Below are positions 4,982-48,354 of a DNA stretch of 64,000 nt, piece by piece. The stretch covers positions 100,708 through 164,707 of the forward strand of contig JAPMXV010000041.1 of assembly GCA_026936335.1 (NCBI GenBank), read 5' to 3'. Below the pieces are notes generated by a model. The model did not search any database, was not told the origin of the DNA, and was given only the letters and a program-made list of their open reading frames with translations. The DNA is from Mantamonas sphyraenae STR306. Taxonomy: Eukaryota > Protista > CRuMs. Made by a program: the position numbers and the translations under genes. Numbering within the stretch: the stretch's first letter is position 1; each line of letters opens with the position of its first letter.

Positions 4982-5884
4982 TCATGCGTTGACACTTGCT
5001 TCATCGACGCCATCGTAGCCACGTGGGCCACCTGTGATGAGGCGAAGGAAAAGGTGTTTCCACAGGAGGAGGTTCTCCTGGGTGGTGCCGAGGACGATAA
5101 AGACGTCGAGGCCGATGGACGAGAGGGCAATGGCATGGCCCAACTCCAACGCAAACACAGGATCCTTTGGATGAAAGGCCTGATAGGCACGGTGCACAAA
5201 CATGGTGATGAAGATGGCAAAAAACACAAAGACAAACACCACGTGCCTGCCAAAGGTGAACCGGTCCACCTGGGTGACGTTGTGAATCTTGACCATGACG
5301 GCAGTCCACAGGACGGTGCCCACCAGCAGGAGGAGGCCCATGACGGCGTAGAAGAAGGAAAACTGGATGCTGCCCTCTTTCACGCCTTTGATCCAACACC
5401 ACAAGCCCAGGTAGCCCATGTTGTCCGTAAACATGGGCACTAGGGTTAGTAGCACGGGGAAGCCCAGTGAGAAGATAAGGAAGCGCTTCTCGTTGCGGTT
5501 GTCCGTGTGGAACTGCTCGCGGCAGATCAGGTCGTACAGGTTGACCACGATGCAGAACCACCAGCAGATTGTGGACGTGCCCATGTACTGAATAAAGAAC
5601 GCCTGCGTGAGACACAGTGCATTGTTGGTCACCAGCGCACCGTAGCCTGAAAACTGCGGGATGGTCAGGGCCGCGCTCAGGGCGCACGCAGGCAGCGCAA
5701 AGTACAACGAAAGCCGCTGCGGGTATCTCCTCTTGCGTTCAAACACAAGGTAGGTGAGGACCACAAAGGCACTGGTGATGAGCGAGGCCACAGAGATCAC
5801 CTCGTAGGTGTGTTTCAGCAAAAGTTGCTCGTCTTGCGTGAACGGCGTCGGAGGCATCTGTTCCGCCCCACCCGGCTGTGACAT
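4982..5884 (-). CDS. 7TM GPCR, Dictyostelium cAMP-receptor (CAR/Crl)-like
   Basis: Single exon, 300 aa from MSQPGG. Seven hydrophobic segments; motifs LCLTQAFFIQY and GYLGLWCWI. Confidence 0.75.
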   Translation of the reverse strand: MSQPGGAEQMPPTPFTQDEQLLLKHTYEVISVASLITSAFVVLTYLVFERKRRYPQRLSLYFALPACALSAALTIPQFSGYGALVTNNALCLTQAFFIQYMGTSTICWWFCIVVNLYDLICREQFHTDNRNEKRFLIFSLGFPVLLTLVPMFTDNMGYLGLWCWIKGVKEGSIQFSFFYAVMGLLLLVGTVLWTAVMVKIHNVTQVDRFTFGRHVVFVFVFFAIFITMFVHRAYQAFHPKDPVFALELGHAIALSSIGLDVFIVLGTTQENLLLWKHLFLRLITGGPRGYDGVDEASVNA

Positions 5885-6030
5885 GATGATCAATGTGTGT
5901 GCTAATGTGTCGGATTGTGTGTGTGTGTGTGGATCGAGTGTCGATGAAATGGGTTGGATTGACAACGGCAACAACCACCTTTCTTTCTTTCTTCTCCCTC
6001 TCATTTCCTCCCCATCACCACCAATCATCA

Positions 6031-6675
6031 TCATCCGAAAAGCTTCATGTAGCAATCGGAGCAATACGGGTGGCCCTTGGCGTCGTCGTGGTATTCCTGG
6101 CCTGCAAGGAGGCTGTTGCACAGGTGGCAGAGAAAGTGCTCGGGGTGCCACTTCTTGCCCAGTGCGGTGACACATTTGCCCTGGATGGCCTGGTTGCAGC
6201 CACCACAGATGGTGCCTGCAAAGCTGTTGTAGTGTGTGGCACAGTAGGGGAACCCATCGCGTTCGTAAAAGGTGCCCGATGTAAAGGGACCATTGCAGGT
6301 GGCGCAGACAAAGTGTTCCGGGTGCCACGTCTTGCCCAGCGCGTTCACAAGCTCCCCCACAATGGGCATGAGACACTTGGCACAGCGTTGCGAGTACATC
6401 TGATGGAAGCACGACTCACAGTACGCCTGCTCGTCACGCTCGTAAAAGGTGGCCCCGTTGAACGGCGTGGCACACTCGGCACACGCAAAGTGCTCCACGT
6501 GCCAATACTTGTTCATGGCAATGATGGAACCCTCCATCACCGGCTGGTGGCATCCCGCACAACGTGGGCTAAACAGCTCCGTGTAGCATTCCTCACAGTA
6601 CGGCTTGTTCTCATTTGCATAGAACGTCACCTGGCCCAAATCCCGGTTGCACGCCTGGCAGCTGAAGCACGCCTG

Positions 6676-14839: not shown

Positions 14840-14914
14840 GCATGAGCATGAGAGCTGTATTTTTCGTTTGTGCGTGAACGCACTCAATAAATGCACTCAA
14901 ACTCACATAAAATA

Positions 14915-15063
14915 CTTGACCATGTCCAAAAGTCGGCTTACTTCGGGACAAATGGCTCCCAGGGCATCGTTGCTGTCTGCCCTGGGCACACCGAGCGGTG
15001 GCTTGCGCTCGGTGATCTTCGCAGCTCCAGTCGTCGATGGAACTGCCCTCACATCCTGTTCAC
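14915..15063 (-). ncRNA. Putative omegaRNA scaffold of Fanzor 1
   Basis: Four consecutive stems: 15021-15029/15038-15046, 14989-14997/15006-15014, 14958-14966/14978-14986 and 14920-14955. Mismatches resolve as G-U pairs only on the minus strand. Confidence 0.68.
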
Positions 15064-18000
15064 TCACCCTTCCGTACCGGTGGTGACTTGATCATTGGAC
15101 GTGGCTGTGGCTGCTGCTTCCTTCTGTCTGCTGAATGGCATGGGTCGTTGTCCCGATTTGATTTGTTCAACAATGATCCAGAAGAATGCTTCGCAGGAGT
15201 GCTGGTCTCGCTGCATCGCCACGTGCAATGGAATGTCCTCGTCGTTGTGGATTTCCCGTTGCAGCAGCGCAAACAACGTCTGCTTTCTGGTGTGGTGATT
15301 GCGCGACTGGTAGCCGCATGTTTTGCAGAACTGGAGCCTGCCCAGGGGTTTGCGCGACACATTGGTGTTGAAGCTGAGTGTCGTTCCACACCTGTGCACA
15401 CTGGATGTGCCATACTCGTCCAGGTCCTTGACCACGTTGTAGTACACGGCCAGCTTGTCCAACACGTCGCCCGTCCGTCCGCCGAGGCTTGATTGTTTCT
15501 TTCCTCCCACCACCAGCACGTGCTGTTTTGGCATCCCTCTGTTGGCCATGAGTTTCTGTGTCTCTTCGATTGACCGTTGCAGGAACTGCGCCTGGATACG
15601 CGTGCCATGCCTCCGTCGTCGCATCTCGTTGTGCGTCATCGTCGGGATCGTCATCTGGAACACCTTGTTGTTGTGTGTCCACATGAGAACCCATGTGTCC
15701 CGTGTGACGCCCCAATCCACCAAGGCGAACAAGGTGTCGTTGACAATGGACACCCACTTCTCCTCCTTCACGGTGTCTCCGTCGTTGCCACCGGGGTCAT
15801 CGACAGCACCAGCATCCACCTCGCTCTCCTGTGCCTCGCCCTCGTAGTTGCCGCCTGTATCGTCGTCTCTGCCCTGTGCACTGTCCGTCCCTGGTGCCGC
15901 ACCCACTTCACCTTGTTGTGTCTCCCTCGACGCCGACCCGATCGTATGAAACTTGCTGACCCCCCGGGACCCAACGTTCCGTCCAAGGTCCCGCAGGCGC
16001 CCATACTCCGACTTGTTCACGAAGGGAGCCATCCATACGGGCAGGGTGTTGGAATACTGCAGGATGTTGGTCGCTGCTGTGAACAGTGGTCCGGAAACCT
16101 TGTTGAGTCGGTTTTTCCCAGTGTCCTTGTCGCTGCTCTTGTTGTTCTTCGCTCGCGTTTGCATCTCTGCCTTGATACGCCAGAGATGGGTCAAACACTC
16201 ATGCTCAATCTTGGCCACCAGTGCGCTGTGCGTCTCGGTGTCGTTGTGGGCGAGCGGGTCTTGGACCAAGGTTTTAGGATAGAACACGATCGCGGCTGTC
16301 CCGGCCGACGATACGTGCGTCGTACCTTTCCAGTGGTGCAGCTGAGTAGGACGCATTCGCATCACGGCTGTCGTGTTGGCCGCAACGCTCGCAAACATGT
16401 CGTCGAACAGCGAGGTCGCGTCCTCGCCCAACGACGCCCACCACCTCGACACTGCACAGCGCACCTTTTCGGGGAACTTGCCTTTGTGCGTCTTCCACAG
16501 CTCCAGCACTCTCTTCCAGGTTGCTGTGCTGATCGAAAGCGCCTTGCCGTTCTCTCCCAGCGTCACAGCTGCCTTCACTGCCTGCCATTGTGTGTCGTTC
16601 TCCAGCAGGAATGGGATCAGCATCGTCTTGGCGTCCTCCGGAGCGAGCATCATCCCCACATCCGCCTCCTCCAGTGTAAGCTGCGGCAGCAGGTTGTGCA
16701 GGATGCAAAGCGGCGCGTTTGCCAACGCTTTCGCCTTGTGCCCCTTGCTCTCGGTCGCAAGCATCGTGCCGTTCGGATCGATGGCCTTCAGCAGCTCCCT
16801 CGCCTTCAACAACAGCATGCGGTAGCTCCTGGATCGTCTGATCTCACCCGCCTTGGTCACTGCCTGTGTTTGCGCGTTTGTCCGTTTCTGCGCCGCTTCA
16901 GCTGCGTGGGCATCGTAGGCAAACCCCAGGGCAGCCTTGCACACACCATGGCGTGTGAATGCCTTGTGAACGCCCCCGTTTGGGTGTTCTTCACTTGATG
17001 CGTCGACAGCTGCAAGCAGGGCAGCCTCGCGGATACCCTGCGCTCCCGGTTCTTGTGCTTCAGCGTAATTAACCAGCAGAGTCACGTACAAAAGCGCCCT
17101 CTTGCTGGTCACCACTTGCTTGAGCCTCGACGTCACCATGTTGGCCAGGAGCCAGCGCATGCGAGTGGCCGCAGCACCCAGGTGGCTGATGTCTGGGGCA
17201 GTGCAGTCCACGCTGCATGTGTTGCCGCCGTCCTTGCTCACAATGCGTCCTGTCATCCTGTCCACGTACAGTTGTCCCTTCACCTTTGTCAGGACATCCC
17301 ACACGAGGCCATCTTTTGACGCACTGGTCATGTACTTGACGGCAGTTTCAATTTGGGTTTGGTTGCATCCCTGAAGGACACCGACAACCGCATTGACAGC
17401 CGTCAGCACACATGGGACAATGTCGTTGTATGTGTCCGCCAGGCGCTGAAGAAGCTGGTCTTCGCTTTCGAGAGCGTGGAACCCGAGGTCACCGAGTTGG
17501 GCGACATTGTGAATTGCCCCAAGGCCAATGGGAATGGTGGTGTCTTTCACGCCTGCGTCGGTCATAGCAGTTTGGATGAACTCGGTCACGTCCTGGATCA
17601 ACAGGTCCTGGTCATCTGGTGGAGGCGCGCTTCTTGAGGTGCGTTTGCGAGGGCGTCGCTGCAGTTGCGTCGTGTCGTGCTCAACGCTCTCCTTTGGCAT
17701 GTCATCCAGCGAGCCTATGGCATGGGCAATGCGTTCTTCGCCTTCGTGTGCTCCTGTGTGAAACGCCGCCGCGGTTTGAGTTTCGTCGTACAGCGAATTC
17801 TCTGCCAAGCTGTTCAGGTCTGCCTCGGTGAACTCGATTACCTTTTCGAAGGTATTGATGTCGTGCAGGAGCACACGTGCAGAGCAGTGCCCATTCAACG
17901 CATCGGCTTGTGCCCTGAGGACCCGCTGGAGTGTGACCACCTGTGAGTGCGCCACGCCCATCTCTACGCCGCTGGAATCCACATGACCCTTTGCTGCAAG

Positions 18001-20834
18001 GTTCTCAGCCATATAGTCCACCAGGTAGTCCCAGACGTGGTGTCTGAACGCCTCCATGTCCATCGCGGCTGCAGTCCCTTTGCCTGGGTTCTGAACGTGT
18101 TCGGCGCGGAGTGTGGCCAGATTATGAAAGACACTCACGGCCTTGTCGTCCTCGTCATGCATGATGGATGCCAATGCCATCTCTGGCTCCTCCAGCTTGA
18201 GGTAGAGCTCCATCTTTCCAGACAGCGTGGCTGTGGCGCTGTGAAGCGGACGGTGTGGGAGGATGAACCTGGCACCGCCGTCGACAAACAGAGCCGTCCG
18301 CACGGCCGCGCACATGCACGCCCGCCCGCTTGTGCTCTTGATGGCCTTGCCACCCGATACAATTTCGATGTTGATCTCTGCCCCGTTCAGTTCGCCACAT
18401 AGAAGCAGCAACGTCCCGAGCCACTGCTTTGCCCGTGGAGACGTCGAGTGCAGCCTGAAAACGGTGTTGTCCGTGCTGTTTCTGAGCAGCTGTACGATGG
18501 TGGCTTCGTCGGCTGGGGTGTGTTTCTTCAAGGCCTTGGCGAGCCTGAAGTAGGGCCTCATCTGCCCCGCCTTCTTGCCGTTGTAACTCCACATCCTGCT
18601 CGACGAGATGAGCAAACGGCGCTGCATGCTCGCTGTCACGCCTGGGGCACCTTCGATGATGGCGTCATGAGTTGCGATCCCCAAACACACGCAAGCCTGT
18701 GTTGTTTTGTCCGGCCCACCGACCTTTCCGAACGCGTACGAGCCCAAATCCACCACGTCGATGTACTCCCGCTTGTCCGCTTCCTTGTCATTCTTCTCTT
18801 TGTTGGCCTTTTCTTCTTTCGCCTTCTTCTCCTTGGCCGTCACCAGCTGTTCAAGCGCCTTTTGCGACGTGGTGGGTTTGCCCGGCAGGGCACCGCGTAA
18901 CGCCGCAAATCCTTGTTCATCCTTTTCCTTGGCACCCTTCTTGAGCATGTTGTCGCCAAACGTGTAGCAGACAACGTGCACCTGGTGTGCAGCACCGTTG
19001 TTTCCACGCACATACATCATCTTTGCGTTGGCGAGCGAGTACTCCAGCTGGCCAACCAAGTACTCTTCGCTCGCCTGCAGGCAGGCCTGTTTCTCCTTTT
19101 CGCGCTGGTTCTGTTGCTGCTCTCGCCTCTTTTCTGCAGCACGCCTTTTCTTGTTCCGCTTGCCACGGCCACCGCCACTTGCTTTGCGCCGCTTGTTGGA
19201 GTTGCTCCCCGTTTCTCTGGTGGGAACGGCGGGCATGGGCAACCTGGTGATTGACGACTCGTGTGGACGCACCGGCGCAGCAGCAGCAGCGTATGAGCAT
19301 GGCTCCGTGGTCCCGACTGTCGCGTGGACGACACCAGGCAAATTGGGTGTCCACTCGACCGAGCTAATGGCGTCGTCGTTGAACTCGAGCCACGTTCCTG
19401 TGTGGATACGCACCATTGCAATGTAATGACCGGCGTTGGCATCTTCGGATGGGTGGTACAGCATCACAGTGTGCACTTGCGCCGCAACTTTCACAGCCAG
19501 GTTGCTGGCAACAACTGCGCCGTTTTCGTATCTTCCGTGGTTGTACGTGTACACAGCAGTGGGCGTGGAGCGCAACTCAGTCGTACTCTTGCCCTGGATC
19601 GCGGGCTTACTCTTGCCTTGGATCGGGGTCTGTGGGCACTCGCTGCAGTTCCATTCAAACGTCCCGCCTTGGGTAATTGGATGAACCGGATGATCAAGGA
19701 AGAATGCCTCTGTTTTGCGCGACGAGAGCTCGTGCTTGCACTCCGGGCAAACGGCATCCGACCTCACAACGACGACGCCACAAGGCAGCGCCCCGAGGTC
19801 GTCCAGGGGGGTGTCTTCGCGTACCGCTTCGAGTACCCCATCCACGAATTGTGTGTGCCCTTGGATGAACTCTCCGAGTGTTAAGAGTCTGGGAAGGGAC
19901 AGTGTGTGTTGGCTATGGTCAGCGACGGAACGGCGTTGTTGGAACGACGATCGCCAAAACTTACGCCTCTGTGGACGCCTGTTGCTTGCGCATCTTTTCT
20001 CCGCGCTCGGTGGAGAACCACGCATGGAGCAGAATTGCGGCCTTGGAGGCCGCGTCCTCGTCGTTGCGTCCGTTCCCCATCATGTGTGACCACAGACACA
20101 AGAGAGAGCGGAGTTGCCAAGTGCGCTGAATTGTCTGAGTGCTCCAGTCGCAGATGCCTCTGCCGAGTGCAATTAGGAGGACACGTACGGCCACAGTCAT
20201 GTAGCACAGTACCGCGCGCACGTTGCTGTGTTGGTGGTAGGGGAGGGGAGGGTGTGTGTTGGTGATTTGGGGAGGGGAAAAGAGTGCACCTTGCACGCTG
20301 CACGCCAGAGGATGACACCACGGGAAATGCTTACCGGATACCGCGACGTGCATTCAACATGTGTTCCACCACGGGGTTGGCCCCAGCAGAGTACTCTCCC
20401 TCGTCGTCAGCACCCAACGTCTCGAAGAGAAACCCGACAACACTCTGGTCGATTTGGGGCGCAAACTCCTCACACAGACCGTTCACGGCGGAATGGATGG
20501 TCTGCGGTGCATCTTGTTCCTGTGCAGGCGTGCCCCCAGTGTCTACTACAACAGGTGTCAGCGCTTGGCGCGCAGCCGAAAAACGAAAACACAGGCAGGA
20601 TAACGCACAGCTGCGCTCCAAAAACGCAAAACACGCTGATGGGGTGCTAGATTGCCAATCAAACTCATCACTGGTCGGCTCCTGATGGTGATGGTGACTC
20701 CCGACATCGGGAGGTGTCGGTGCGAAAGTCGATTCGTTCTCCGCGGCGCCAGCTGCCGCCAGCATCCGTTCTGCCACCCTTCTTGACCGGCGAGGCCCAG
20801 TTGGGGCAGTGTTGCCCGGCGTCTCGTCACTCAT
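15064..20834 (-). CDS. Spliced USP(C19)-like peptidase - Fanzor fusion, ~1861 aa; exons 20834-20335, 20225-19965, 19888-15064
   Basis: GTAAG..CAG introns join in frame. Cys box GIRNVRAVLCYMT, QQASTEA, two CxxC, His box GHYIAMVR..WLEFNDD. RuvC-I ALVDWG, DEYGTS-x3-RC, CKTC, RuvC-III QRDQHS. Confidence 0.85.
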
Positions 20835-21530
20835 GGTGTTGCGTGCCGGGTGGATACGTTGTCGACGCCCGCGCCAAAATCCGAATCCTGAATCCAACCC
20901 ATTCTCATATCCACCTTCATGCTGCATTTCCGACACGTACATACACTACAGGACACGGAGATTAGATACCGGAGTTGTATGACATAGCTGGTGGTGTCAG
21001 ATGCACCCGCCTGGGGAGCCGCCAATTCGATGTGCGCTTGCGCTCGTCCAGTCGATTCATGGGTCGTGAATCCATACCACGCGCACGCCAAACATACGCG
21101 GAGTATCTACATACCCGCTCTGGTCATCGGTAATCATCCAGCCAGTGTGGAACGAGATTGGCCAAGGCTGCACGCCGTGCCAATTTCAGCGCACTGGTCC
21201 GGCGCCCTCAACCCTTGTCAGCGACCTGTGCTTCAGTCAGTGAATGCACGCTCACGGCCCGTAGCAGCAGATCAGATCAGCTGCCGTGTTTACCCGGATG
21301 CAGTTGTTTTGGTTTCCCGGACGTCGCACGGGAAGACAACAGCAGCAAGCGAGGCGGATGATGTGCAAACCCCGTGATAGTGTGGATCTTTATCGGTGTG
21401 CACGAGGCCCCTACGGTGCCGTGTCTCACTCAAACAGACGTCATCGACGGGAACACAAGCCGTAAATGCTGTGCAATTTCATCGCAGGTGTGCCAAGCCG
21501 TCCCGTCGTTCTTTTGCCACCTGGAGAGTT

Positions 21531-22462
21531 CCATGTCGGTTGTGGGATGCCCGGGATGGTGTACAAGGAGCGTGGGACACCGTGCCGGTGGTTGCGTTGG
21601 AGATCGGCAGCGAATGACCCCGGCGCTGGACAACCTTCCCATTGCGTCCCTTTCGTAATTCAAAGTGTGCTCCATGTCGGTTGTGGGATGCCCAGGATAG
21701 TATACAGGGAGTGTGGGACGCCGGGTTGATGCTGGCGTTGGAGATCGGTGTGGTGAATGATTCGTGTGCAGAACAGCCCTGCCATTCCGTTCGAACCGAG
21801 GTTGGTAGAGTGTTCCATGTCGGTTGTGGGATGCCCGGGATGGTATACAGGGAGTGTGGGACACCGGGTTGATGCTGGCGTTGGAGATCGGTGTGGTGAA
21901 TGATTCGTGTGCAGAACAGCCCTGCCATTCCGTTCGATCCGAGGTTGGTAGAGTGTTCCATGTCGGTTGTGGGATGCCCAGGATAGTATACAGGGAGTGT
22001 GGGACGCCGGGTTGATGCTGGCGTTGGAGATCGGTGTGGTGAATGATTCGTGTGCAGAACAGCCCTGCCATTCCGTTCGAACCGAGGTTGGTAGAGTGTT
22101 CCATGTCGGTTGTGGGATGCCCGGGATGGTATACAGGGAGTGTGGGACACCGGGTTGATGCTGGCGTTGGAGATCGGTGTGGTGAATGATTCGTGTGCAG
22201 AACAGCCCTGCCATTCCGTTCGATCCGAGGTTGGTAGAGTGTTCCATGTCGGTTGTGGGATGCCCAGGATAGTATACAGGGAGTGTGGGACGCCGGGTTG
22301 ATGCTGGCGTTGGAGATCGGTGTGGTGAATGATTCGTGTGCAGAACAGCCCTGCCATTCCGTTCGATCCGAGGTTGGTAGAGTGTTCCATGTCGGTTGTG
22401 GGATGCCCGGGATGGTATACAGGGAGTGTGGGACACCGGGTTGATGCTGGCGTTGGAGATCG
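21531..22462. repeat. 143-bp tandem array (~6.5 units) with alternating A/B variants
   Basis: Units start at 21531 (diverged, 141 bp), 21672, 21815, 21958, 22101, 22244 and 22387 (truncated). Confidence 0.95.
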
Positions 22463-28137: not shown

Positions 28138-29010
28138 GAGCGATGGGCACGCAAGCGCATCGTCTGGGACACACACAAGTGCATTGAATCCATCTCATTC
28201 TCATTCTCATCCTACCCTTTCTCCACAGTGTAAAGTGTGGCCAATCGCAATGCCATGCTGTGCTTGCCCACCTTGAGCTCGTCTTTCATTCCCACCAAAT
28301 TCCGTGTGTGGGTCACCTGGGTGCACACCACCACCTGCGTCCTTGCCGCAACGTGTCTCCAACCGCGTTGTACCTTGTGGCGACACCCATGCATGTGTGT
28401 GACCAGCAGGGAGGGTCGTTTCACGACACCGCGCAAGTGTTGTGGGTGGCCCTCTGTTCTGCTGCGATTCTCATCTCTCGTTCCTCACGTGCAAGACTGA
28501 TGCGGAAAAACAGATTCATCATTGCAAAGATGAGGAGGATGACACCGGCAATGATGGTGGGGACACCGACGACAAGATCATCGATAGCAGCAAAATAAAC
28601 ACCCACACCGATGCCAGCCAGCGAGACAGCCAGAAGCAACAGCACCATGAGCGTGGCTGGACGACACAGCATTTCAATCAGACGTGACAGTGGGTTTGCC
28701 ATGATTGTGTGTCGTGTGTGGGCGATGGGCACGCAAGCGCGGCACCCGTCTTTCCCTCGCTGGTTCTGCATTCACATCACCCGAACACAAGTGTATTCCT
28801 TCCTTCTCATTCTCATCCTACTCTTTCTCCACAGTGTAAAGTGTGCGTGGCCAATCCCGATGCCATGCGGTGCTTGCCCACCGTTGACCTCGTCTTTCAT
28901 TCCCACCAAATTCTGTGTGTGGGTCACCTGGGTGCACACCACCACCTGCGTCCTTGCCACACATGCCACAGCCACAACACACCCCCGGTCGCGCTGTACC
29001 TTGCGGCCAC
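28130..29010. repeat. Local duplication of intergenic DNA in the membrane-protein array (~28130-28390 vs ~28720-29010)
   Basis: Shared blocks such as ttctccacagtgtaaagtgtg and tctttcattcccaccaaatt..gggtcacctgggtgcacaccaccacctgcgtccttgcc. Confidence 0.85.
28421..28702 (-). CDS. Small 2-TM membrane protein, paralog 3
   Basis: 93 aa; MANPLSRLIEMLCRPATLMVLLLLA. Confidence 0.65.
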   Translation of the reverse strand: MANPLSRLIEMLCRPATLMVLLLLAVSLAGIGVGVYFAAIDDLVVGVPTIIAGVILLIFAMMNLFFRISLAREEREMRIAAEQRATHNTCAVS

Positions 29011-29059
29011 ACCCTCGCAAAGGCCTGCCCATCAGCAGGAGGCGGGTCTTCCCACTCTT

Positions 29060-29308
29060 CTACATCCCAACGACCATCATGTTCCTTTCGGCACGTGCAC
29101 GACGTATACGGAACATCATGAGTGCCAATACAAAGACAAGGAGGGTGACACCGGCAATGATGATGGTGACACCGACGACGAAATCACCGGTGGTAGAAAA
29201 GTACGCGCCAACACCGATGCCAGCCAGCGAGGCAGCCAGAAGCAACAGCACCATGAGCGTGGCTGGACGACAGAAGAATCGAATGAGACGTGACAGTGGG
29301 TTTGCCAT
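29060..29308 (-). CDS. Small 2-TM membrane protein, paralog 4
   Basis: 82 aa; MANPLSRLIRFFCRPATLMVLLLLA, closely similar to paralog 3. Confidence 0.65.
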   Translation of the reverse strand: MANPLSRLIRFFCRPATLMVLLLLAASLAGIGVGAYFSTTGDFVVGVTIIIAGVTLLVFVLALMMFRIRRARAERNMMVVGM

Positions 29309-29447
29309 GATTGTGTGGGTGCGGCGGCGGCGGGTGGAAGGTCTCCTCCTTCCGTCTGCGCGAGCCACCAGCACACAGGAGGACGAGTGATGACGGAGGG
29401 TATGGATGAGAAATGCAGTCATGGTATATTCCACAGACTGTGGTGTG

Positions 29448-37053: not shown

Positions 37054-37099
37054 TGTCTGCAACAAGGTGTGTGGGCTGGGTGCGATGGCGCGTATTGTA

Positions 37100-37199
37100 T
37101 TGGCCACATGGCTGTGCACATGGCCTTTGGCTAGTCGATGCACCACATGGTGCGACAAGGTAGTATGGGTAAGCCTGTGGATTTGGATCTGTAGGCCGA
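37100..37199 (-). ncRNA. Putative omegaRNA scaffold of Fanzor 2
   Basis: Stems 37102-37110/37117-37125 (two G-U pairs on the minus strand only), 37134-37156 and ~37172-37197, between the Fanzor stop codon and the terminal TA. Confidence 0.55.
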
Positions 37200-40100
37200 T
37201 CATTTGCCTCCTTCGTCGCTTGGTACCCTTTGTCGCTTGGGAGCATGCTGTTGTGGTTGTGACCCACCCGAATCCTCTTCTTCCCCCACTTCCTCATCTC
37301 TTCTCTTCTTGCTTCTCTCGCCTGCCTTGTCTGCTGCCTTGCGTTGCACCTTGATTTTCTTTGTTGGCTTCTCCATCCAGACGCCTGTGACAAAGAAGAG
37401 CATCTGCCGCCAGAAGATGCAGTGTGCAGAGCCTCGGTCTCTCTGAACTGCCTGGTGCAAGTTGTGCTCACCCTCGCCCTCCATCTCTTTGCATGCGTGC
37501 CGTTGTGCAAAGCGTTTGAGCTGCTTGGTGGCGTCAAACATGTTGGAGTCGATGTCCGACAGGCAGTGGCTGCTGCACGTCCGCCATCGCCCAAACTTCT
37601 CAGCGCCAAAGTCGTCCAAGTTGTCGACAGCGCTGCCACAGAAGCACTGCTGCGATGTATACCTCTCGTCTGCTGCAATGACGACAAAGTGGTTGGCCAG
37701 CATCTCCCGCATCTCCTGCGATTTCCCGCGTCCGCCAAACGTCTTTGTCGGCTGCAGCACAATCACCTGCTCCAGGCCCAGATGCGCGCGGAACTTGTGG
37801 ATCACGGAGATCATCTCACGCACGCCTGCCATCCTTCGTTTGCGAAACGTTGCGTACTGCGCACGCATGTGCTTCGCATCCTTGTGCAAATCTTTTCCGA
37901 AGACACGTTGCTTGTACTCCTCCTTGAAGTCCGTGTACGACGCCAGCACTCGGTCCTGCCCTGCCTTGTGTGCCTGCACATCGTGGCTGTCCAGGGGCAA
38001 GGTGGCCACATACAGCTGGCCGTCCCGCACAAAGATCGCCTCGACCCAGTCGCGTCCACGACCAGGGTCAATGCTGATCCACAGCACCTTGCGTGCATGC
38101 TCAAGGACTGCGTATCCATTCTTGGCAAAGGCCTTGACCTGCTCGACCAAGCCACGCTTCGGAACGGGGTACTTCGGGAAACCGGGAGCAATCTTCTGGA
38201 TCTCGGTCGTCCACGTGTCTGGCATGCCCGTGGGCTTCAGCACGGCCAGGGCAATCAGCGCGTTCTTCTTGGGGTCCAGCAGAAGGGGCAGGAGATGAGC
38301 CATCCTTGGCCTGATCAATGTTGCGAGGCTCGCCGGTGAAGGCAGGAGAGTGTGAACTCTTGGTGGCTGTAACACAAACGCTCGTCTGTACTTGCCCTGA
38401 GCGGCGATTCCACCAGAGAGCATGCGCATGCTGCTGGCGCTGACGTTCTTCAGCAGGCACCTTGCGTTTTTCGTGCCAACGCCGCGCGTGAGCATGAGTA
38501 TTGACTTCACGGGAACTGTTCGCAGCGGCCGTTTCCCTGCCCAGTGCTTGTTGGGCAGATCCTCGTCACTGTTGTTTTCTGGCATGCGACGAGCATACCG
38601 ACACCGATACACTGCCTGCTTGAGCCATTTAGGGAGACTCGGGATGGCCTCATCCGTCAAAACCCACTCGCGTTCTTTCAGTGCATTCCACCAACCCGGA
38701 TTGGCGTCCGACTTGGCGTTCGGGTTTGCGTCTGGGGGGTCGTTTGGGTTGGCGTCCGGGTTGGCGTCCGGGTTGGCGTCCGGGTTGGCGTCCGGGTTGG
38801 CGTCCGGGTTGGCGTCTTGGGGGTCATCTGGGTTGGCATTCCCGTTCGGCTTTCCATGGGCTTTCCACCTTGCTTCCATGGTGTTCACAAAGATCTTAAA
38901 CGCGTACGTCTTGACGGAGTACGCGCCGAAGACGAACTGGCCGCCAATGTCAACCGGACCGGGAAACATCGCGTCAACACAGTCCAATGATGCTGCTGTC
39001 GATGCAATGGCGCGCTTTGCTTGTGTGCTTTTGAGATTGGTCTTCAGGTCGGGCTTGAGCATCACATCCAACAGCACAGACAACGCGTCCCGTTTGCCAC
39101 GCACGTGCTTGCCGAGTTGATCCGAGAGACTTGCGCACACCTCCTCGTACGGGTCCCATGGAGGTACACCTTGTGAGCGCTGCGCATCCACAGAGAGCTG
39201 CGCATCCACGGAGGACTCCTGCACATCCATGGATGACTCCACATCCACAGAGGGCAGCACATCCACGGAGGACTCCTGCACATCCATGGATGACTCCACA
39301 TCCACAGAGGGCAGCACATCCACGGAGGACTCCTGCACATCCATGGATGACTCCACATCCACAGAGGGCAGCACATCCACGGAGGACTCCTGCACATCCA
39401 TGGATGACTCCACATCCACAGAGGGCAGCACATCCACGGAGGACTCCTGCACATCCATGGATGACTCCACATCCACAGAGGGCAGCACATCCACGGAGGA
39501 CTCCTGCACATCCATGGAGGGCCCCTGGACCTCCACTGAAGAGTGAGCAGCAGCCGCGGCAGCAGCCTTTGTGGCCTTGTGGATGGGCTGAGAGAACACA
39601 AAGTCACGTGTGTCCTTTGTCGACACCTGGTGGGTTTGGAACGCCTTCTTGGTCTTTGCATAGCTTGTACGCATGAGCGCGGCGACGCTGGCCACGATGG
39701 CGGACATGGGCAGCTCGCTGGGCGCCCCGTTCCTCATCAGCGCCACGATCATCGGGTAGGCACACAAGGAGATGGCCGACTGCAGGCTGCCATTGAAGGC
39801 ACGAGCGATGTCATTGGCCATGCTCGACACGGGCGCCTCCGAAAGATCCACCTTCAGACGCGTGACCATGAAGGAAAAGTCGAAACCATGTTGACCATCG
39901 CCCGCCTTCTGTATCCCGTTCCTGGTAAATCGTACAGACTTGAGCTCCTCTGGGGTGTCCACGTTCTCCTTGAGTACCTTGAGGTTGTGCGTCGCCACTG
40001 TGCGCAGGGCCGTGAACGCTTCGAGCAGGTAGAAGGGCTTCACGCGGCTGTGATCTTCCACCATCCCGTCGACCACCATCCCGTCAATCATCGTCTGATC

Positions 40101-43100
40101 CTCTGTTGGCAGCTCCGCCTCGTCCAGCTCCGACTCATCCAGCTCCACCTCATCCAGCTCCGCCTCCCCCTGCTCGTCGCTGCCATCCACCGATTGCTGA
40201 CGTCCATGGGGCGCAGTGAACCATGCAGTTGGGTCCTTTTTCACCTCTGGAATCACCTGGTCGACGAACCATGCTCGAAGCAAGGCTGTTTGCACGAGCA
40301 TACAGTCCGCCAATGCTCCAAGCACGTCAGCCTCGCTCTTTCCAAGCCCACGCACGTTCGCCTCCAGCTTCAGATTCTTCTTGAGATCGCTTTGGTACTC
40401 AACAAAGTCGTGCTCCCTGATCGCCGTGGCCGAAGGCAGCAGCGTGGCGAAATCAAAACCGTGCGGAATCCACACGGGTCGCCCACGCCGGCTTCCCTTC
40501 ACGTCATCCTTGTCATAAAAAGCATCCTTGAGCGGCGTCAATGTCTCGCCCTCTGTTGTTGCCCCTGTCTGGAGCGCCACCTCGAATAGGTCCGCACGGG
40601 TCGCTGATGATGGGGTCGCAGGAGGGCGAAGCACTTGGCCATCCTTCCGCAGGAGCACTGCCAGTTGTTTCTCGTGCCGTGCTGTGATCACATGTGGAAC
40701 AGATGTCCACCTTTTAACGGCCTCACGGGAACCGAGTGACTCCTCCTTGTTCTTTTTGAAGACAGATGCATCAAAGCCAGCAGGAATCTCCTCCACAAGC
40801 TGCTCGATTTCGGCTTCAGTTGCCGTCAGCAGGTAGGGCACCGCACAGTCCTCCTCGTCCGGCTCCGTGGCGTCCTCCTGGCCCACCATGGCCTTCGCAA
40901 CATCCTTGTGAATGCCCTGTGCGAGATGGAATGGCATCTCCTGCACGTGCAGCGTCCCTTCCCGTGCACTGTGGCCACGCCCGAGCTTGTACTCCATATG
41001 CATACGGGTGTCATCGGTGTTCTTCAGCTCTGGCTTGTGGTTGTAGGTGATGTTGACCTCAGTCAAGCCCAATGCTTGTGCCAACTCCTCCACTGAGCGC
41101 GGTTTCGGCTTGGCCTGCGTACACAGTCTGCTGAACGACTCCATCACGGTCTGCGCGCGTTGATGATCGAGACCATGCACTCCTCCAAGCCGCTGGCAGA
41201 CTGCTTGCGCCAAGGCGACGGCCGACATCGGACCATGGTCACGTTCGGTCTCCTCCAGACCCACCGTGAGCAGCTGCTGCCTCAGCGCTTCAGTCTCTTC
41301 TTCCTTCTTTTCGTCGTCACTCTTGATCGATGATTTCCCTCGCGATTTGGTCTTTGTCGTCTTCCCCTTTTTGGGCTTCTTCTTGACTCCCTTGGCCCAG
41401 GTTATCAGTTTCCATGAGGTCGCTTTGGCGTGCACTTTCTTCGTGTCCACCACATGGGCGTTGAAGATGTTGACAACCCGCAGCCCCGGAGCTGACCCAT
41501 GGAGTGCGAGGCCAGCCATGAGACGCCCCTCGCGGTGGCACAGAACGACATCGTCCTCGGCCTTGACCTGGTTTTTGGCGGCCTGCTTTCTGACGGCCTT
41601 ATTCTGACGGCCTGGTTTGTGACGAACTCGTCCAGTGACATCGTTGCCACTTGATGGGCAGCAAGGTAGTCGCGCATCACTGGCGCCAGGGTGGTGACAG
41701 TGGCACGAGCGGCGAACGCTCGCTGCTTGGCGTTGGAGAAGGTGTCCTGGGACGCAGCTGCACTCAGTTGCTGGTAGAAGCGTTGCAGCTCGGCTGGCGT
41801 GGCTCGACCTGCAAACAGTGCGGCTGTGGACACGACGTCGTCCACAACCACAACCGTGCGAGTCGAGAACAGCTTGCTCAATCTGGGCAACACAGTGTCG
41901 AGGATCGTGGTGACCCATTGCCAGGCAGAGGTGAACGTGGCGGGATGCGTGATGGTATGGTCGGAGAGGTGCAAGTAGCGAGCGGCGAGGCTGCTGAGGC
42001 CAACGTACACTGCGGCAAGGCGGGTTCCCCCCGACCCAGCGACGCCACGCTGCACACCACCCTCCACGCCCTCGTTGACAGCAGAGTCAGCCAAAGGTGG
42101 GGGTTGCCAGTTGTCGTTCAACACGTCCAGACACTTGGCGGTCACTGGCGTCTTGTCGCCGCTTGAAGTCGGAAGCTGTGTCAGCTGCCCTGCTGCCGAT
42201 GTCTGCGTGGCGGGCACACGGTTGAAACGGAGCCCACGCACAGATGCGGTTGACCCGGCAACCTGCACCCGAGTCGAAGGTGGCCGTCCCAGAGGCGCTG
42301 GTGTTGTCCCACGAGCCCGTGCAGCGTGCGCGTACAAACGCCTTCCAGCAGCTGAGGTGGAGCTCTCCTTGCTCTGCATCACAACTCGCGGGCCCCTGAT
42401 GGCCATGGGCTTGCGGAACACGTTTGATTTGTTGTCGAGAGCCACGGTGCCCATGGCAGACGGCAACCGCCACTCCTTTTCCGGTTGAGACTTGAGGAAG
42501 ACCAGTTTGAAACCCGTGGGCGCAAGCTCAGGCGCTGGCCACTCCTCGTCAGTCAGCTGCTGCGCAAGGTCATTGTACACACGGAATTTCCCTTCCGCCA
42601 GTGGAAGCCATGCCGTGTAGTGGGCCCCTTTGAAACAGAGCACCCCGAAGGGCACTTGCTGCTCTTGCTCCGGCAGGCCCTCGCCCACACGCTGCTGGAG
42701 TGCTCCTCGCTCCGCAAGCTTTGCAACCCCTGCGGCGTCCGCTGGCGGGGGGGTACCACCATGCAACATCTGGATGGGGAATCCAGAGTCGAATGCGACC
42801 TCGAGGCGGTGATGGAAATCTGCCGAGTCACCCCACAGGTCGTCGCCCCCCGCGAGCGCTGTAGCGGCAAGGAAGAGATCGTTGCAGGCCACGGCATACA
42901 TGTCGTCGTCACAGAACATGGCCATGCACCAGGTCTGCCGCAGAAGGGCCGTGTTGACGACGCTGGGGTCTGTGTGTGCCGGCGCAAAGAAGAGGGGCGG
43001 GTGAGCAATCGGGTCAGCGGGATTGAGTGCGGTTTGAGCTTACCTTGCTCCCCAGGCTCAGGCCCCAACTGGGTCGGGTCGTTCCCGCCTGTCGTTACCT

Positions 43101-43419
43101 CCAGCCATGCGAGAAGGTACTTGCACATGGACGTTCGCAGAGGTGGAGAGGCGCGCACAGCAGTTGAATAGGACGACACCCAGCATGCCACCTTCGCGGT
43201 GTTGACACCGTTGACGTTGGCGTACCCTTGCATGTCACCTTCGGGCTCGCCCAGATTTGCAGGTAGTCTTGTTCGTGGTGTGTACAGGGAAATCGACTCG
43301 TTGTCGGCCACACAGGTCGGACACACCAGCGACACGTGAGATCGGGCTGACGTTACCCAGCACACCATGAGCACTGTCTCGTTGTTGCAGCTATGGTGCT
43401 GACACTTCAGAATCGACAT
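37200..43419 (-). CDS. Spliced USP-like peptidase - Fanzor fusion, ~2043 aa when a 14-bp insertion at ~41600 is removed; exons 43419-43044, 42969-37200
   Basis: Cys box GYANVNGVNTAKVACWVSS, spliced GEQDPS, His box GAHYTAWL..FRVYND. RuvC-I WISIDPG, ADERYTSQQCFC, CSSHC, RuvC-III QRDRGSAHCI. As assembled, the frame is broken at 41588-41613. Confidence 0.82.
38697..38840 (-). repeat. 12-bp coding repeat (NPDA)n in Fanzor 2
   Basis: gggttggcgtcc tandem units. Confidence 0.9.
39203..39520 (-). repeat. 57-bp coding tandem repeat (SMDVQESSVDVLPSVDVES) x ~5.5 in Fanzor 2
   Basis: Five identical 19-aa units plus a partial unit. Confidence 0.95.
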
Positions 43420-44739: not shown

Positions 44740-45760
44740 CTACATGCGGTACCCGCAGTGATGGACCCAGTTCCTCACATCAGCAGCCGTAACATGCCCC
44801 AATGCAGTACAGATCGCCGCGAAAGTGCAAATGTCCACTCGATGAAATTCCCTGCGGAGGACCGCCTTGAACTTGCTAAACATGAGCTCGATGGGGTTGA
44901 GCGTAGGTGTGCAAGGCGGGAGAAACTCGACATCCACCCCATACCAGGTGCACAGCTGGCGTACAGCATCGCCTTTGTGGATGGAGCAGTTGTCCATGAC
45001 CCAGAACTGTTTGGCGGCAATCTCGCATGCGGGGCAAGAGGTCTTGCTCCAGGAACTCCATAAACAGCTGCCGGTTGTATGACCCCTCTCGCATTGTGTA
45101 CGCTACCAGTGGCGAGCGCCCACCGGTGCTGATGGCCGCCAGCACGCTGATGCGCTTTTGCTTGGGATGGTTCTCCACAACGACCGCTGGTTGCCCACGT
45201 TTCGCACGACCATATCTCCTGTAGCACACTCTGTTGTTCACTGCAGTTTCGTCCAAGAAGACCACGTTCGGCGCTCGGAACACACCGCGAATCCTCATTG
45301 CTCGAGTAAACTCGCGTGTGCGCGCCACGGTGGATTCCCTGAACCGTTGCTTGGCGATAGCACTCACCTTCTTGCGAGTCAGTCCCATGCGCGCACAAGA
45401 ACGGCGAATTGTGGACAGAGATACCACCTTGTTGCGATGAAGAGCAACGGCTACTTGCAACTCGTCCAGGTACAGTCGCGGATCATCGGCCACCTGTTCA
45501 GCAATGAATTGGTCGTCATTGGCATCCAGGAGACGCCTGAACGGTGGTTGGGCCACAAGAGGGCGTACATGGCCCATGGCTCGGTGTTGACGTACAATCT
45601 TGGACACGACGGAAGGAGACACACCGAGAGCCTCCGCTGTGCCTCTGCACGAAGGACGCAAGCTGGATTGGTAGTGAAAGAGAATGCATTCTCGTTTGTC
45701 CGCCGAAAAGGCTTTGCCGTGGATGTATGACCCACCCGTTGCATTCGTTTTGACGGTCAT
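44740..45760 (-). CDS. IS630/Tc1-mariner DD34E transposase, frameshifted near 45000
   Basis: [45 protein letters not shown], then in another frame [21 protein letters not shown] (34 residues between D and E). Confidence 0.92.
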
Positions 45761-45814
45761 TTTTGTTTTGCGTTGCTGACCACAGCGCGCGGAACGCCAC
45801 AATACAAAGGAGCG

Positions 45815-48354
45815 ATGCGCTTGATCAAAACTGCCACATGCAACCTGAACCAGTGGAGCCTGGACTTTGAAGGCAACCTGGAACGGACGATGAAAAGCAT
45901 CCAGGTAGCCAAGGATCGTGGGTGCACCGTGCGTCTGGGGCCGGAACTGGAGCTGTGAGTTGGGTTGAGTGATCGGAACCAGGAATTGCACACGAGGTCC
46001 GTGCGTGCGGGGAAGGCAGGGCTAACACAGGAGGGCGGATGGACAACGCACGTGACTGTGGGATGTGTGGCGGATGTGTGTGTGCATGTGCGTGGCAGGT
46101 GTGGATACGGGTGTCAGGACGCGTTTCTGGAGGGAGACACAGTTCGGCACTCATGGGAGAGTCTTGCGACGTTGCTGGCCAGCGACGTCACAAACGACAT
46201 CGTGTGCGATATTGGCATGCCTGTCATCCACAGATCGGTAAGTGGGACGTGTGGGGGGTGGTGATGTGTGACCATTGTGGTGGGCAAGGGGCGGACAGCC
46301 CCCCGAGTCCCGGGCAAGAAGAAGCGAGGAAGACTTGACGACAGGACGCGTTTGCGGCGTCGGGTCGCAGTAACGCTCACACGTACATTGCCATGGGTGT
46401 GGTTTGTGACCACGCGTGTGCCCGTGTCCCACAGGTGCGCTACAACTGCCGTGTGTTTTGCCTGAATGGCAAGATCCTGTTGATCCGGCCCAAGATCTTC
46501 TTGGCGTCCGACGGCAACTACCGCGAGCAGCGCTATTTCACGGCGTGGCCCAACCGGCGGACGGTGGAGCAGCACCAGCTGCCGCAGGCGATTGCCGAAC
46601 TGACAGGGCAGTCGACGGTGCCATTTGGAGAGGCGTACCTGCAGCTGAGTGACACGAGCCTGGGAACAGAGTTGTGTGAAGAACTGTTCACGCCCGACTC
46701 CCCACACATCCAACTGGCCAACAACGGCGTGGAAATCATCCTCAACGGAAGTGGGTCGCATCACCAGCTGCGCAAGCTGGACACGCGTGTCAACCTCATC
46801 CTGAGTGCTGTGCGCAAGTGCGGCGGCTTGTACATGTACGCCAACCAGCAGGGTTGCGACGGCGACCGTCTCTACTACGACGGCTGTGCCATGATTGCCA
46901 GCAACGACGTCCTGCTTGCTCAGGCCTCACAGTTTTCCATGCGCGATGTCGAGGTCATTGACGCCGTGGTCGACCTGGACGAGATTGTGTCCTACCGAGC
47001 CGCCGTCATTTCACGCTCCCATCAGGCATCCATTGCCGAACGCATCCCCAGCGTGGTGGTGGACTTTCGTGCCTGTTGTCCCATGAGCTCTTCCATGACC
47101 ATGGTGGCCACCAAGCCTATCGAGGTGTTTTACCACACCCCGGAGGAAGAGATTGCCCTCAGCCCAGCCTGCTGGCTGTGGGATTACTTGCGTCGCTCGG
47201 GCCTTTCGGGCTTCTTTGTGCCCCTGAGCGGCGGTGCAGACAGCGCCTCTGTGGCGGCCATTGTCGGCTCCATGTGTCAGCTTGTGGTGCAGCAGGTGGA
47301 GGCCGGCAACGAGGAGGTGATCAAGGATGTGGAGCGAGTGGTTGGCCGTGTGCCGTCTGCACCCGAAGAGATGGCCAACAGTGTGTTGGTCACATGCTAC
47401 ATGGGCACCACCAACAGTTCCGACGACACGCGTGGTCGTGCCGAGCGTCTGGCGAAGGAAATCGGCGCCTTCCACAAGGAGGTTACCATCGACGAGGTGA
47501 CGGGTGCACTGGAGAAGCTGTTTACGGACAACTTTGGCCTGAAACCCAAGTTCAAGGTGCACGGGGGAAGTGAGGTGGAGAACCTGGCCTTGCAGAACAT
47601 CCAAGCACGCAGCAGGATGGTGATTGCGTACTACTTTGCCCAGCTGGTGCAATGGTCGCGTGGCGAACGTGGAGGTCTGCTGGTGCTGAGCAGTGCCAAT
47701 GTGGACGAGTCGTTGCGTGGCTACATGACCAAGTATGACTGCTCGTCGGGCGATCTGAACCCGATCGGGTCGATTTCCAAGACGGATCTCAAACGCTTTC
47801 TGCACTGGGCCAGTTTGCGTCTGGGCTACTCGACACTGAGTGAAATTGCAGGCGCTCCGCCCACCGCCGAACTGGAGCCCATCACCAGCAACTACACACA
47901 GACAGACGAGGAGGACATGGGCATGAGCTACGAGGAGCTGTCGTTCTACGGGCGCCTGCGCAAGATTTCCCGCTGTGGCCCCTACGAGATGTATCTGCGC
48001 CTGCTGTCCATCTGGTCATCGTTGCCAGCCGAAGAGGTGGCCAACAAGGTCAAGTTCTTCTTCCGCATGTATGCCATCAACCGGCACAAGACGACGACGT
48101 TGACGCCAGCGCTGCACATGGAAACGTACTCGCCGGATGACAACCGGTACGACTTGCGCCAGTTCCTGTACAGTCGCATGCACTGGCAGTATCGCAAGAT
48201 TGACGAGCATGTGGCCAAGCTGCGCGAGATGGGCTGTGCCGAGCAGGACCGGCGCAAGTGCAACCACGAGCTGCAGGTTGGCGCGGGCACACGCGGAGAC
48301 GGCCGCGTCGTTGGCGTTCACAACCACAGTGGCGTGTTGTTGGCCAAACTGTGA
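45815..48354 (+). CDS. NADSYN1: Glutamine-dependent NAD+ synthetase, 2 introns
   Basis: [65 protein letters not shown]. Confidence 0.96.

Follow-up and report, generated by a model that had tools for sequence, protein, structure and literature searches.

Fanzor RNA-guided nucleases are usually 600-800 amino acids (aa) long (PMC11423790, PMC10711439). Their published signatures include a DPG motif and a shifted Glu before a zinc (Zn) finger (PMC10711439, PMC10530073), and their C-terminal motif was defined by Bao and Jurka in 2013 (PMC3627910). Mariner elements carry Fanzor1 (PMC3627910). Likewise, there are DNA transposons with OTU, Ulp1, and C19 domains, whose proposed role at DNA breaks is to manipulate ubiquitin/SUMO signalling (PMC2836005), and a host ligase can ubiquitinate and degrade Fanzor in human cells (PMC11514467). 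Among proteases of the ubiquitin-specific protease (USP) type, the fingerless TssM of Burkholderia is ubiquitin-selective, with some NEDD8 cross-reactivity and no reactivity toward SUMO1/2 or ISG15 (10.1101/2023.08.01.551441); in the SUMO-specific USPL1, the fingers domain is retained and binds Zn (PMC8983731). Both Mariner-Fanzor1 elements and transposons that carry a protease are known, and the new part described here is the fusion of a putative deubiquitinase (DUB) to a Fanzor; the literature, as far as our incomplete coverage of it extends, contained no report of a deubiquitinase fused to Fanzor or TnpB. The fusion was met in a 64,000-nucleotide (nt) stretch of Mantamonas sphyraenae STR306 (assembly GCA_026936335.1, contig JAPMXV010000041.1, positions 100,708 to 164,707), hereafter the window. 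Its minus strand holds two such loci, element 1 and element 2, and the latter, our main subject, is probably a Tc1/IS630-type element that encodes one USP-like/Fanzor protein of ~2,050 aa.

The element 2 gene and its nuclease

The fusion region of element 2 is laid out as three overlapping open reading frames (ORFs; Table 1), which an earlier note on this DNA joined into one gene with a 74-nt intron. Frame switches and canonical splice ends agree with that proposal, and the preferred reading of the three ORFs is a single predicted gene of ~2,050 codons. Frames were called with a 3-periodic Markov model. Its training set consisted of long ORFs from beyond the zone under test, and the model assigned 48 of 57 held-out pieces to their right frame. 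The model favours frame A from 43419 to 43045, no frame from 43043 to 42970, frame B to ~41605, and frame C from there on, each gene piece scoring highest in its proposed frame. The interval without a favoured frame is the putative intron; among the listed candidates that join the frames, no other is canonical at both its donor and its acceptor.

The second switch, placed at 41605 (range 41620-41588), falls in a tandem repeat whose one short unit has a base missing at an A run near 41602. Here the earlier note had removed a 14-bp insertion; a single base missing from the 15-nt unit appears the simpler account. Each exon and ORF piece was a query of its own, and lengths were taken from coordinates. 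The coding length is 2048 aa if one base is missing, and the ~2043 aa given earlier applies if 14 nt are extra. Other devices were considered for this break and set aside: a programmed -1 frameshift, for which there is no canonical slippery heptamer; a hidden intron, whose canonical-looking candidates would remove strongly coding sequence; and GT/GC-AG segments of 11-14 nt, far shorter than the introns seen (74-216 nt).

The C-terminal part of the gene encodes a Fanzor-type RuvC domain in which the D, E, and D described earlier are intact. RuvC-I reads DPG (D 38069). The RuvC-II strand, QVIVLQP, is without the canonical Glu, and an alternative Glu (37667) stands six residues ahead of the first half of the Zn finger, CFC (CxC). 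The second half, CSSHC (CxxxC), lies at 37577, and the RD motif (D 37439) follows a 40-aa insert. The Bao-Jurka motif, D-x(125-275)-[TS][TS]-x-x-C4 finger-x(5-50)-RD, thereby occurs as D-x136-TS-xx-finger-x40-RD, with atypical finger spacing. The protein ends in a tail whose basic clusters resemble a nuclear localization signal (NLS), again in line with the earlier description.

Family membership was examined with a Fanzor1 profile of giant-virus proteins chosen by motif, which matches the solved Fanzor1 structures SpuFz1, GtFz1, and PpFz1 at E 1e-53 to 1e-62. Both RuvC domains of the window align to it in hhalign (E 1e-5, probability 82%), and in HMMER they are the top two matches of the window to the viral Fanzor profile (E 2e-6 for element 2 and 4e-4 for the other); the test is partly circular, the set having been picked on DExxTS, yet the alignment extends to both sides of that motif. 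A structure model of the RuvC (pLDDT 44, pTM 0.48, low confidence) has the RNase H strand order, and its top Foldseek matches in the PDB are RuvC domains of the Cas12 family, listed as 8iew, Cas12a, and Cas12f (probability 0.9-0.99, E ~4e-3), together with a viral RuvC. We describe the nuclease as apparently Fanzor1-like, short of a confirmed Fanzor1. Between the protease-like and nuclease parts, the middle region carries in-frame repeats of 57 nt (5.9 copies, 39185-39518), 12 nt (10 copies, 38696-38816), and 15 nt (3.8 copies, 40110-40166).

Table 1. Features of element 2, in gene order, and of element 1, by position in the window
Feature	Position	Strand	Details
Tc1/IS630-type DD34E transposase, paired-like helix-turn-helix (HTH) N-terminus	45760-44760	minus	triad D 45253, D 44994, E 44889
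ORF of 146 codons between transposase and fusion gene	43925-43485	minus	coding-like periodicity, +30.6 nats; hydrophobic stretch; no Pfam match
Exon 1: Cys/His cluster (aa 6-36) and USP-like Cys box	43419-43044	minus	GxxN 43227; candidate catalytic Cys79 at 43185
Putative spliceosomal intron, 74 nt	43043-42970	minus	GTAAG...CACACACAG, CTGAC branch-like motif, pyrimidine tract, CAG acceptor; no frame signal inside
Rest of USP-like domain	42969-42490	minus	helix DSADF ~42829; His242 at 42622, then Tyr; Asn258/Asp259 at 42574/42571; last strand FKLVFLK
Low-complexity linker and start of middle region	42489-41603	minus	frame B favoured to 41603
Tandem repeat of 15 nt (5 codons), 3.9 copies	41567-41624	minus	TRF; one unit 14 nt
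Middle region, ~1,150 aa, in the expected REC/WED place	41602-38150	minus	in-frame repeats
Fanzor-type RuvC and Zn finger	38149-37371	minus	motifs, hhalign, hidden Markov model (HMM), Foldseek
Basic/acidic tail and stop codon	37370-37200	minus	NLS-like clusters KKIK, KKRR, PKRQR
Expected place of omegaRNA and right end	37199-37095	minus	two small hairpins; weak candidate end
Decayed Tc1/IS630 transposase of element 1	23177-22500	minus	several frameshifts
Element 1	20834-15064	minus	exons 20834-20335, 20225-19965, 19888-15064; two introns; 1861 aa by coordinates

The USP-like domain and the paralog

The N-terminus of the element 2 protein opens with a cluster of Cys and His residues (C6, H8, H9, C11, C20, H28, C33, and C36), including the CQHHSC (43404) and CPTC (43323) that the earlier note had placed ahead of the USP-like domain. 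It may form a Zn module; no known family matched it. The Cys box of the USP-like domain has GYAN, a 5-residue insertion, and a Trp directly after the candidate Cys (codon 43185-43183), and the His box has its Asn and Asp 16 and 17 residues past the His, in agreement with the GxxN..CW and HY..YND recorded earlier (Cys ~43184, His ~42621). An EQD motif, also assigned to the domain at that time, lies outside the coding frame of element 2 and is present only in a wrong frame; in element 1, EQD is found upstream of the Cys box. The reported lack of a CxxC finger region, unlike element 1, is borne out. A short, probably helical stretch replaces the fingers, with ~57 aa between a thumb-like helix and a palm strand. 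The Cys79-His242 spacing of 163 aa and the lack of a CxxC pair make the domain at most an atypical, TssM-like USP.

We compared the domain with profiles built from 73 viral USPs and, by hhalign, with 18 viral USPs. In a gap-tolerant profile scan of the window, the His box (31.0) is surpassed only by element 1 and lies above the highest-scoring background site (24.7). It ranks 3 of 697 by HMMER (E 0.31 window-wide), and hhalign aligns it as far as the last USP strand (E 6e-4, probability 28%). Among 92,402 window positions scored with a custom profile, the Cys box ranks third if the gap is left free and sixth if it is canonical. The likely thumb box, DSADF, scores at background, as does NDEDA of element 1. 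A low-confidence model of the His-containing piece has palm-like strands. Weak antibody-type and PRTase-type matches of the pieces were dismissed. For the USP identity given in the earlier note, the signal is weak but non-random: it comes from profile comparison for the His box and from motif resemblance for the Cys box, with no family library match. Resting on custom profile tests, the USP call in element 2 is moderately supported, as is the predicted loss of the fingers, and a shortened USP-like domain is the most likely reading of the N-terminus, one that we hold with reasonable confidence.

Element 1 has the same architecture. It reads without a frameshift, its His box and RuvC share one ORF, and it shows a predicted USP-Fanzor fusion in the same genome without frame repair, the kind of uninterrupted paralog proposed earlier as a check, found here within the window. 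The first intron interrupts its Cys box (Cys 20206), the His is at 19428, the Cys-His spacing is 234 aa, and the CxxC fingers are kept. The His box matches Ubp8 in the PDB (E 0.003) and Pfam UCH (E 0.001). RuvC-I is DWG rather than DPG, and the RuvC domains of the two elements are 24% identical. Four hairpins in a row follow the stop codon (14900-15049, minus strand; minimum free energy -64.6, z -5.3, 0 of 200 shuffles as good) and make a strong omegaRNA candidate, for which Rfam gave no match. Of the two elements, this is the one with the stronger evidence and the better experimental subject.

Two further observations concern element 1. At ~16350-16405 (minus strand), a stretch out of frame has a likeness, probably fortuitous, to the finger-plus-RD motif of TnpB (HMM E 0.07). 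A 143-nt tandem array (21524-22462; 6.6 copies, 92% matches, two alternating variants, no variable spacers) occupies the expected place of the C-terminal half of its transposase.

Transposase, element ends, and genomic setting

The transposase upstream of the element 2 fusion gene, absent from the earlier note, is of the Tc1/IS630 family. Its one defect is a surplus G in a G run (45002-45000), which shifts the frame of an otherwise complete gene. Its two pieces match NCBIfam IS630 (E 2e-18 and 1e-10), and it matches Pfam DDE_3 (E 4e-9) and, weakly, PAX and HTH_Tnp_Tc3_2. The nearest relatives are ~30% identical, the two named ones being fungal; the three contigs examined for such relatives carry no annotated Fanzor. 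The ORF of 146 codons between transposase and fusion gene may be a small gene that the element carries as cargo, or else an upstream exon.

An 8-nt TA-centred inverted match links 45800-45807 with 37095-37102 (chance ~0.006 for 7 pairs, post hoc), and the inner 30 nt of these candidate ends pair no better than random. At the putative 3' ends of both elements (37098-37110 and 14910-14922, minus strand), a terminal stem is followed by a similar CATG..G.CAA and TA, a shared pattern that could, weakly, mark the right ends.

The window (GC ~58%) is part of a gene-dense, intron-bearing eukaryotic chromosome with host genes including gamma-tubulin complex, nucleoside transporter, ELMO, MCM3, NAD synthetase, PCIF1, and ALDH. 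An endogenous-virus context was ruled out, the neighbours being housekeeping genes with introns. Element 2 is flanked by the divergent genes MCM3 (ATG 37053, minus strand) and NAD synthetase (ATG 45815, plus strand), with 147 nt from the Fanzor stop to the MCM3 start. At the other end, the start codons of transposase and NAD synthetase are just 55 nt apart (45760-45815), and the promoter of the host gene must therefore reach into the transposon, either its end or its coding sequence. The transposases of both elements stand head-to-head with a host gene, in element 1 the nucleoside transporter.

The three introns of the elements (42970-43043, 19889-19964, and 20226-20334) are short and C-rich (GC skew -0.3 to -0.5) with a GTAAG donor, whereas the four host introns checked are longer and G-rich (GC skew +0.1 to +0.45), a small hint of a possible foreign origin. 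Elsewhere in the window, an unannotated region at 28195-29317 occurs in two copies 606 nt apart, with blocks 83-92% identical and an ORF at 28611 without a Pfam match, and a G protein-coupled receptor of the slime-mould cAMP-receptor type lies at 4985-6412 on the minus strand (Pfam Dicty_CAR, E 5e-7), which may hint at the lineage of the host.

Alternative readings and comparison with known systems

A number of results weigh against reading element 2 as a transposon with one USP-like/Fanzor gene. The gene model is predicted from the DNA sequence. The protease pieces, with exons searched singly, had no match in Pfam (including UCH, UCH_1, and C98), NCBIfam, or PDB sequence searches; the Cys box went undetected by HMMER and hhalign, and the gap range of its custom profile was fixed after inspection of the sequence. 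Structure prediction, one of the checks proposed in the earlier note, gave the RuvC match described above and, for the His-containing piece, an unusable single-sequence fold (pLDDT 38) with an uninformative Foldseek search. The middle region has no detectable similarity to the WED/REC of the Fanzor1 profile or to element 1, and no TDG-like WED motif was found in element 2. Similarly, element 2 has no convincing terminal inverted repeats (TIRs) or TA duplication, and neither the 147 nt ahead of MCM3 (z -0.3) nor the interval 37700-36981 (best z -1.8; no Rfam match) shows excess folding, a missing signal compatible with a short or trans-supplied RNA. Beyond the RuvC and His box, elements 1 and 2 show no similarity that could be detected, and they could represent an old duplication or parallel (independent) fusions.

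We also count the absence of an outside homologue against it. A word-index protein search with the long ORF or piece B found none beyond the window, and in HMMER over 1.84 billion proteins the two-RuvC alignment retrieved only one repeat protein, in which profile positions 6-39 matched 40 times. No homologue came from plasmid tblastn or from scans of viral and metagenome loci, ten window proteins had no exact match in a collection of 15 billion proteins, and none of 41 viral Fanzor-like loci had a USP close by. A DNA pattern search with the shared motifs gave four matches, all due to chance.

Two neighbouring genes, a ~650-aa protease ending at 41405 and a Fanzor beginning at Met 41525 or a later start, would be in keeping with frames that are discontinuous in the assembly and with ORFs that each have a possible start and stop of their own. 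We find this highly improbable. The coding signal of frame B ends at ~41605, well ahead of its stop, and frame C is already favoured over the 77 nt upstream of its first Met (+10.3 vs -0.1 nats), which argues against two separate genes; the switch sits on the repeat unit that is one base short, with no intergenic space, and element 1 holds both domains in a single ORF. The N-terminus might otherwise be a papain-fold enzyme other than a USP-family DUB, for example a self-processing protease that frees the nuclease from a polyprotein, or an inactive, decayed remnant. The lack of a library match, a QD-type box at background, the insertion and Trp of the Cys box, and a protein unusually long for a Fanzor would all suit such an origin. 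It is nonetheless unlikely. The His box fits USP profiles, and the fit includes the Tyr next to the His, the ND at +16/17, and the last strand. In DUBs that cut at Gly-Gly, the typical gatekeeper is an aromatic residue that follows the catalytic His. Element 2 has kept all three catalytic candidates, and the domain of the paralog is clearly USP.

The earlier note raised a different ubiquitin-like substrate, and a fingerless domain specialised for SUMO or NEDD8 would have the paralogs acting on different ubiquitin-like signals. The combination of CW and HxxxW..G..DL may be a USPL1-like pattern. Fingers are normally part of the ubiquitin S1 site, and transposons elsewhere carry SUMO proteases (Ulp1; PMC2836005). 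On the other hand, the fingerless TssM is ubiquitin-selective, the SUMO-specific USPL1 has fingers, and no piece matched USPL1 in the PDB; given these precedents, a change of modifier now looks improbable. Finally, element 2 could be an old immobile insertion whose Fanzor was kept by the host (domesticated) and acts guide-free or with a guide in trans. Such a history is suggested by the lack of clear TIRs, the tight spacing to host genes on both sides, a GC content at third codon positions (GC3) of the Fanzor gene near host-gene values, a RuvC divergence between the elements like that of distant homologues, and, in element 1, a badly decayed transposase beside an intact Fanzor. We consider it doubtful, since the element 2 transposase is complete but for one base, the element introns are C-rich against G-rich host introns, and the element 2 Fanzor gene is itself frameshifted in the assembly.

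Under the transposon reading that we favour, a cut-and-paste Tc1/IS630-type element would have inserted between MCM3 and NAD synthetase. Its protein would comprise, in order, the Cys/His module, a reduced USP-type protease (Cys79, His242, and Asn258 or Asp259), an expanded stretch of ~1,450 aa that is largely unassignable, a Fanzor1-type RuvC, and the NLS-like tail. By analogy with Fanzor biology, a working form may load omegaRNA, enter the nucleus, and cut guide-matching DNA, most likely empty or excised sites, and such guide-directed cutting may promote retention of the element. The tethered protease would, on precedent, most likely remove ubiquitin itself rather than another modifier. Its target could be the Fanzor itself, in cis, or proteins at the break; this would allow escape from proteasomal turnover and could blunt or steer break signalling, as proposed for the OTU, Ulp1, and C19 domains of DNA transposons (PMC2836005). 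Taken alone, this cis-DUB mechanism is tentative, and we would sooner expect it to be revised than confirmed as written. Two single-base homopolymer slips and the absence of a detectable omegaRNA scaffold suggest that this copy is recently decaying or mis-assembled. A native allele may be intact, and the lineage may possess a family of giant RNA-guided nucleases that serve as natural guide-targeted DUBs, editing ubiquitin at the cut site, with fingered and fingerless paralogs tuned to different chain types or modifiers; we offer this extension with considerable doubt.

If the fusion is real, a Fanzor of three times the usual size carries its own deubiquitinase, which would tie RNA-guided cutting to the control of ubiquitin. 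Such a protein would bear on how Fanzors deal with eukaryotic protein turnover and break signalling, or turn them to use. It would make the old idea that transposons carry ubiquitin/SUMO proteases to manage DNA repair directly testable in one protein. The architecture occurs twice within the 64 kb of the window, the two forms being very diverged, and the contribution of element 2 is mainly to indicate that it is old and variable. A eukaryotic fingerless USP would, in addition, be a second independent case besides TssM.

Relative to element 1, element 2 likewise has a Tc1-like transposase upstream, a spliced USP N-terminus, and a Fanzor RuvC. It differs in being fingerless and frameshifted, in its DPG motif, in its lack of an omegaRNA signal, and in its near-complete transposase. 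With Fanzor1 proteins (SpuFz1, GtFz1, PpFz1, and those of giant viruses), it shares DPG, the shifted Glu, a C4 finger followed by RD, an NLS-like tail, an intron, and an adjoining eukaryotic DDE transposase. Unlike them, it is ~2,050 aa long with a protease-like N-terminus, has no detected TDG/WED or REC similarity and no omegaRNA signal, and features a CxC...CxxxC finger with a 40-aa insert ahead of RD. The elements PGv-1 and PUl-1 also place a Tc1/IS630 transposase before a Fanzor on the same strand, in PGv-1 with a small ORF between, as here (PMC3627910). Their cargo is an endonuclease or methyltransferase and no protease (PMC3627910), whereas that of element 2 is a giant spliced fusion, in an element without a clear TIR/TA duplication.

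On the protease side, element 2 resembles the fingerless TssM and CYLD, which has truncated fingers, in combining USP boxes with deleted or shortened fingers. The Cys-His spacing is 134 in TssM, 163 in element 2, 220 in USPL1, and 234 in element 1, and both TssM and element 2 have an aromatic residue after the His. No sequence similarity to TssM or CYLD was detected, and element 2 is eukaryotic and nuclease-fused; the loss of fingers was therefore likely independent. Lastly, Ginger1 OTU/Ulp1, Mutator Ulp1, Helitron OTU, and the Trichomonas transposase-C19 similarly unite an enzyme of mobile DNA with an isopeptidase (PMC2836005). In those systems the protease is joined to a transposase or Rep/helicase, whereas in element 2, probably a new, USP-fused version of the Tc1/mariner-Fanzor1 elements, it is joined to an RNA-guided nuclease.

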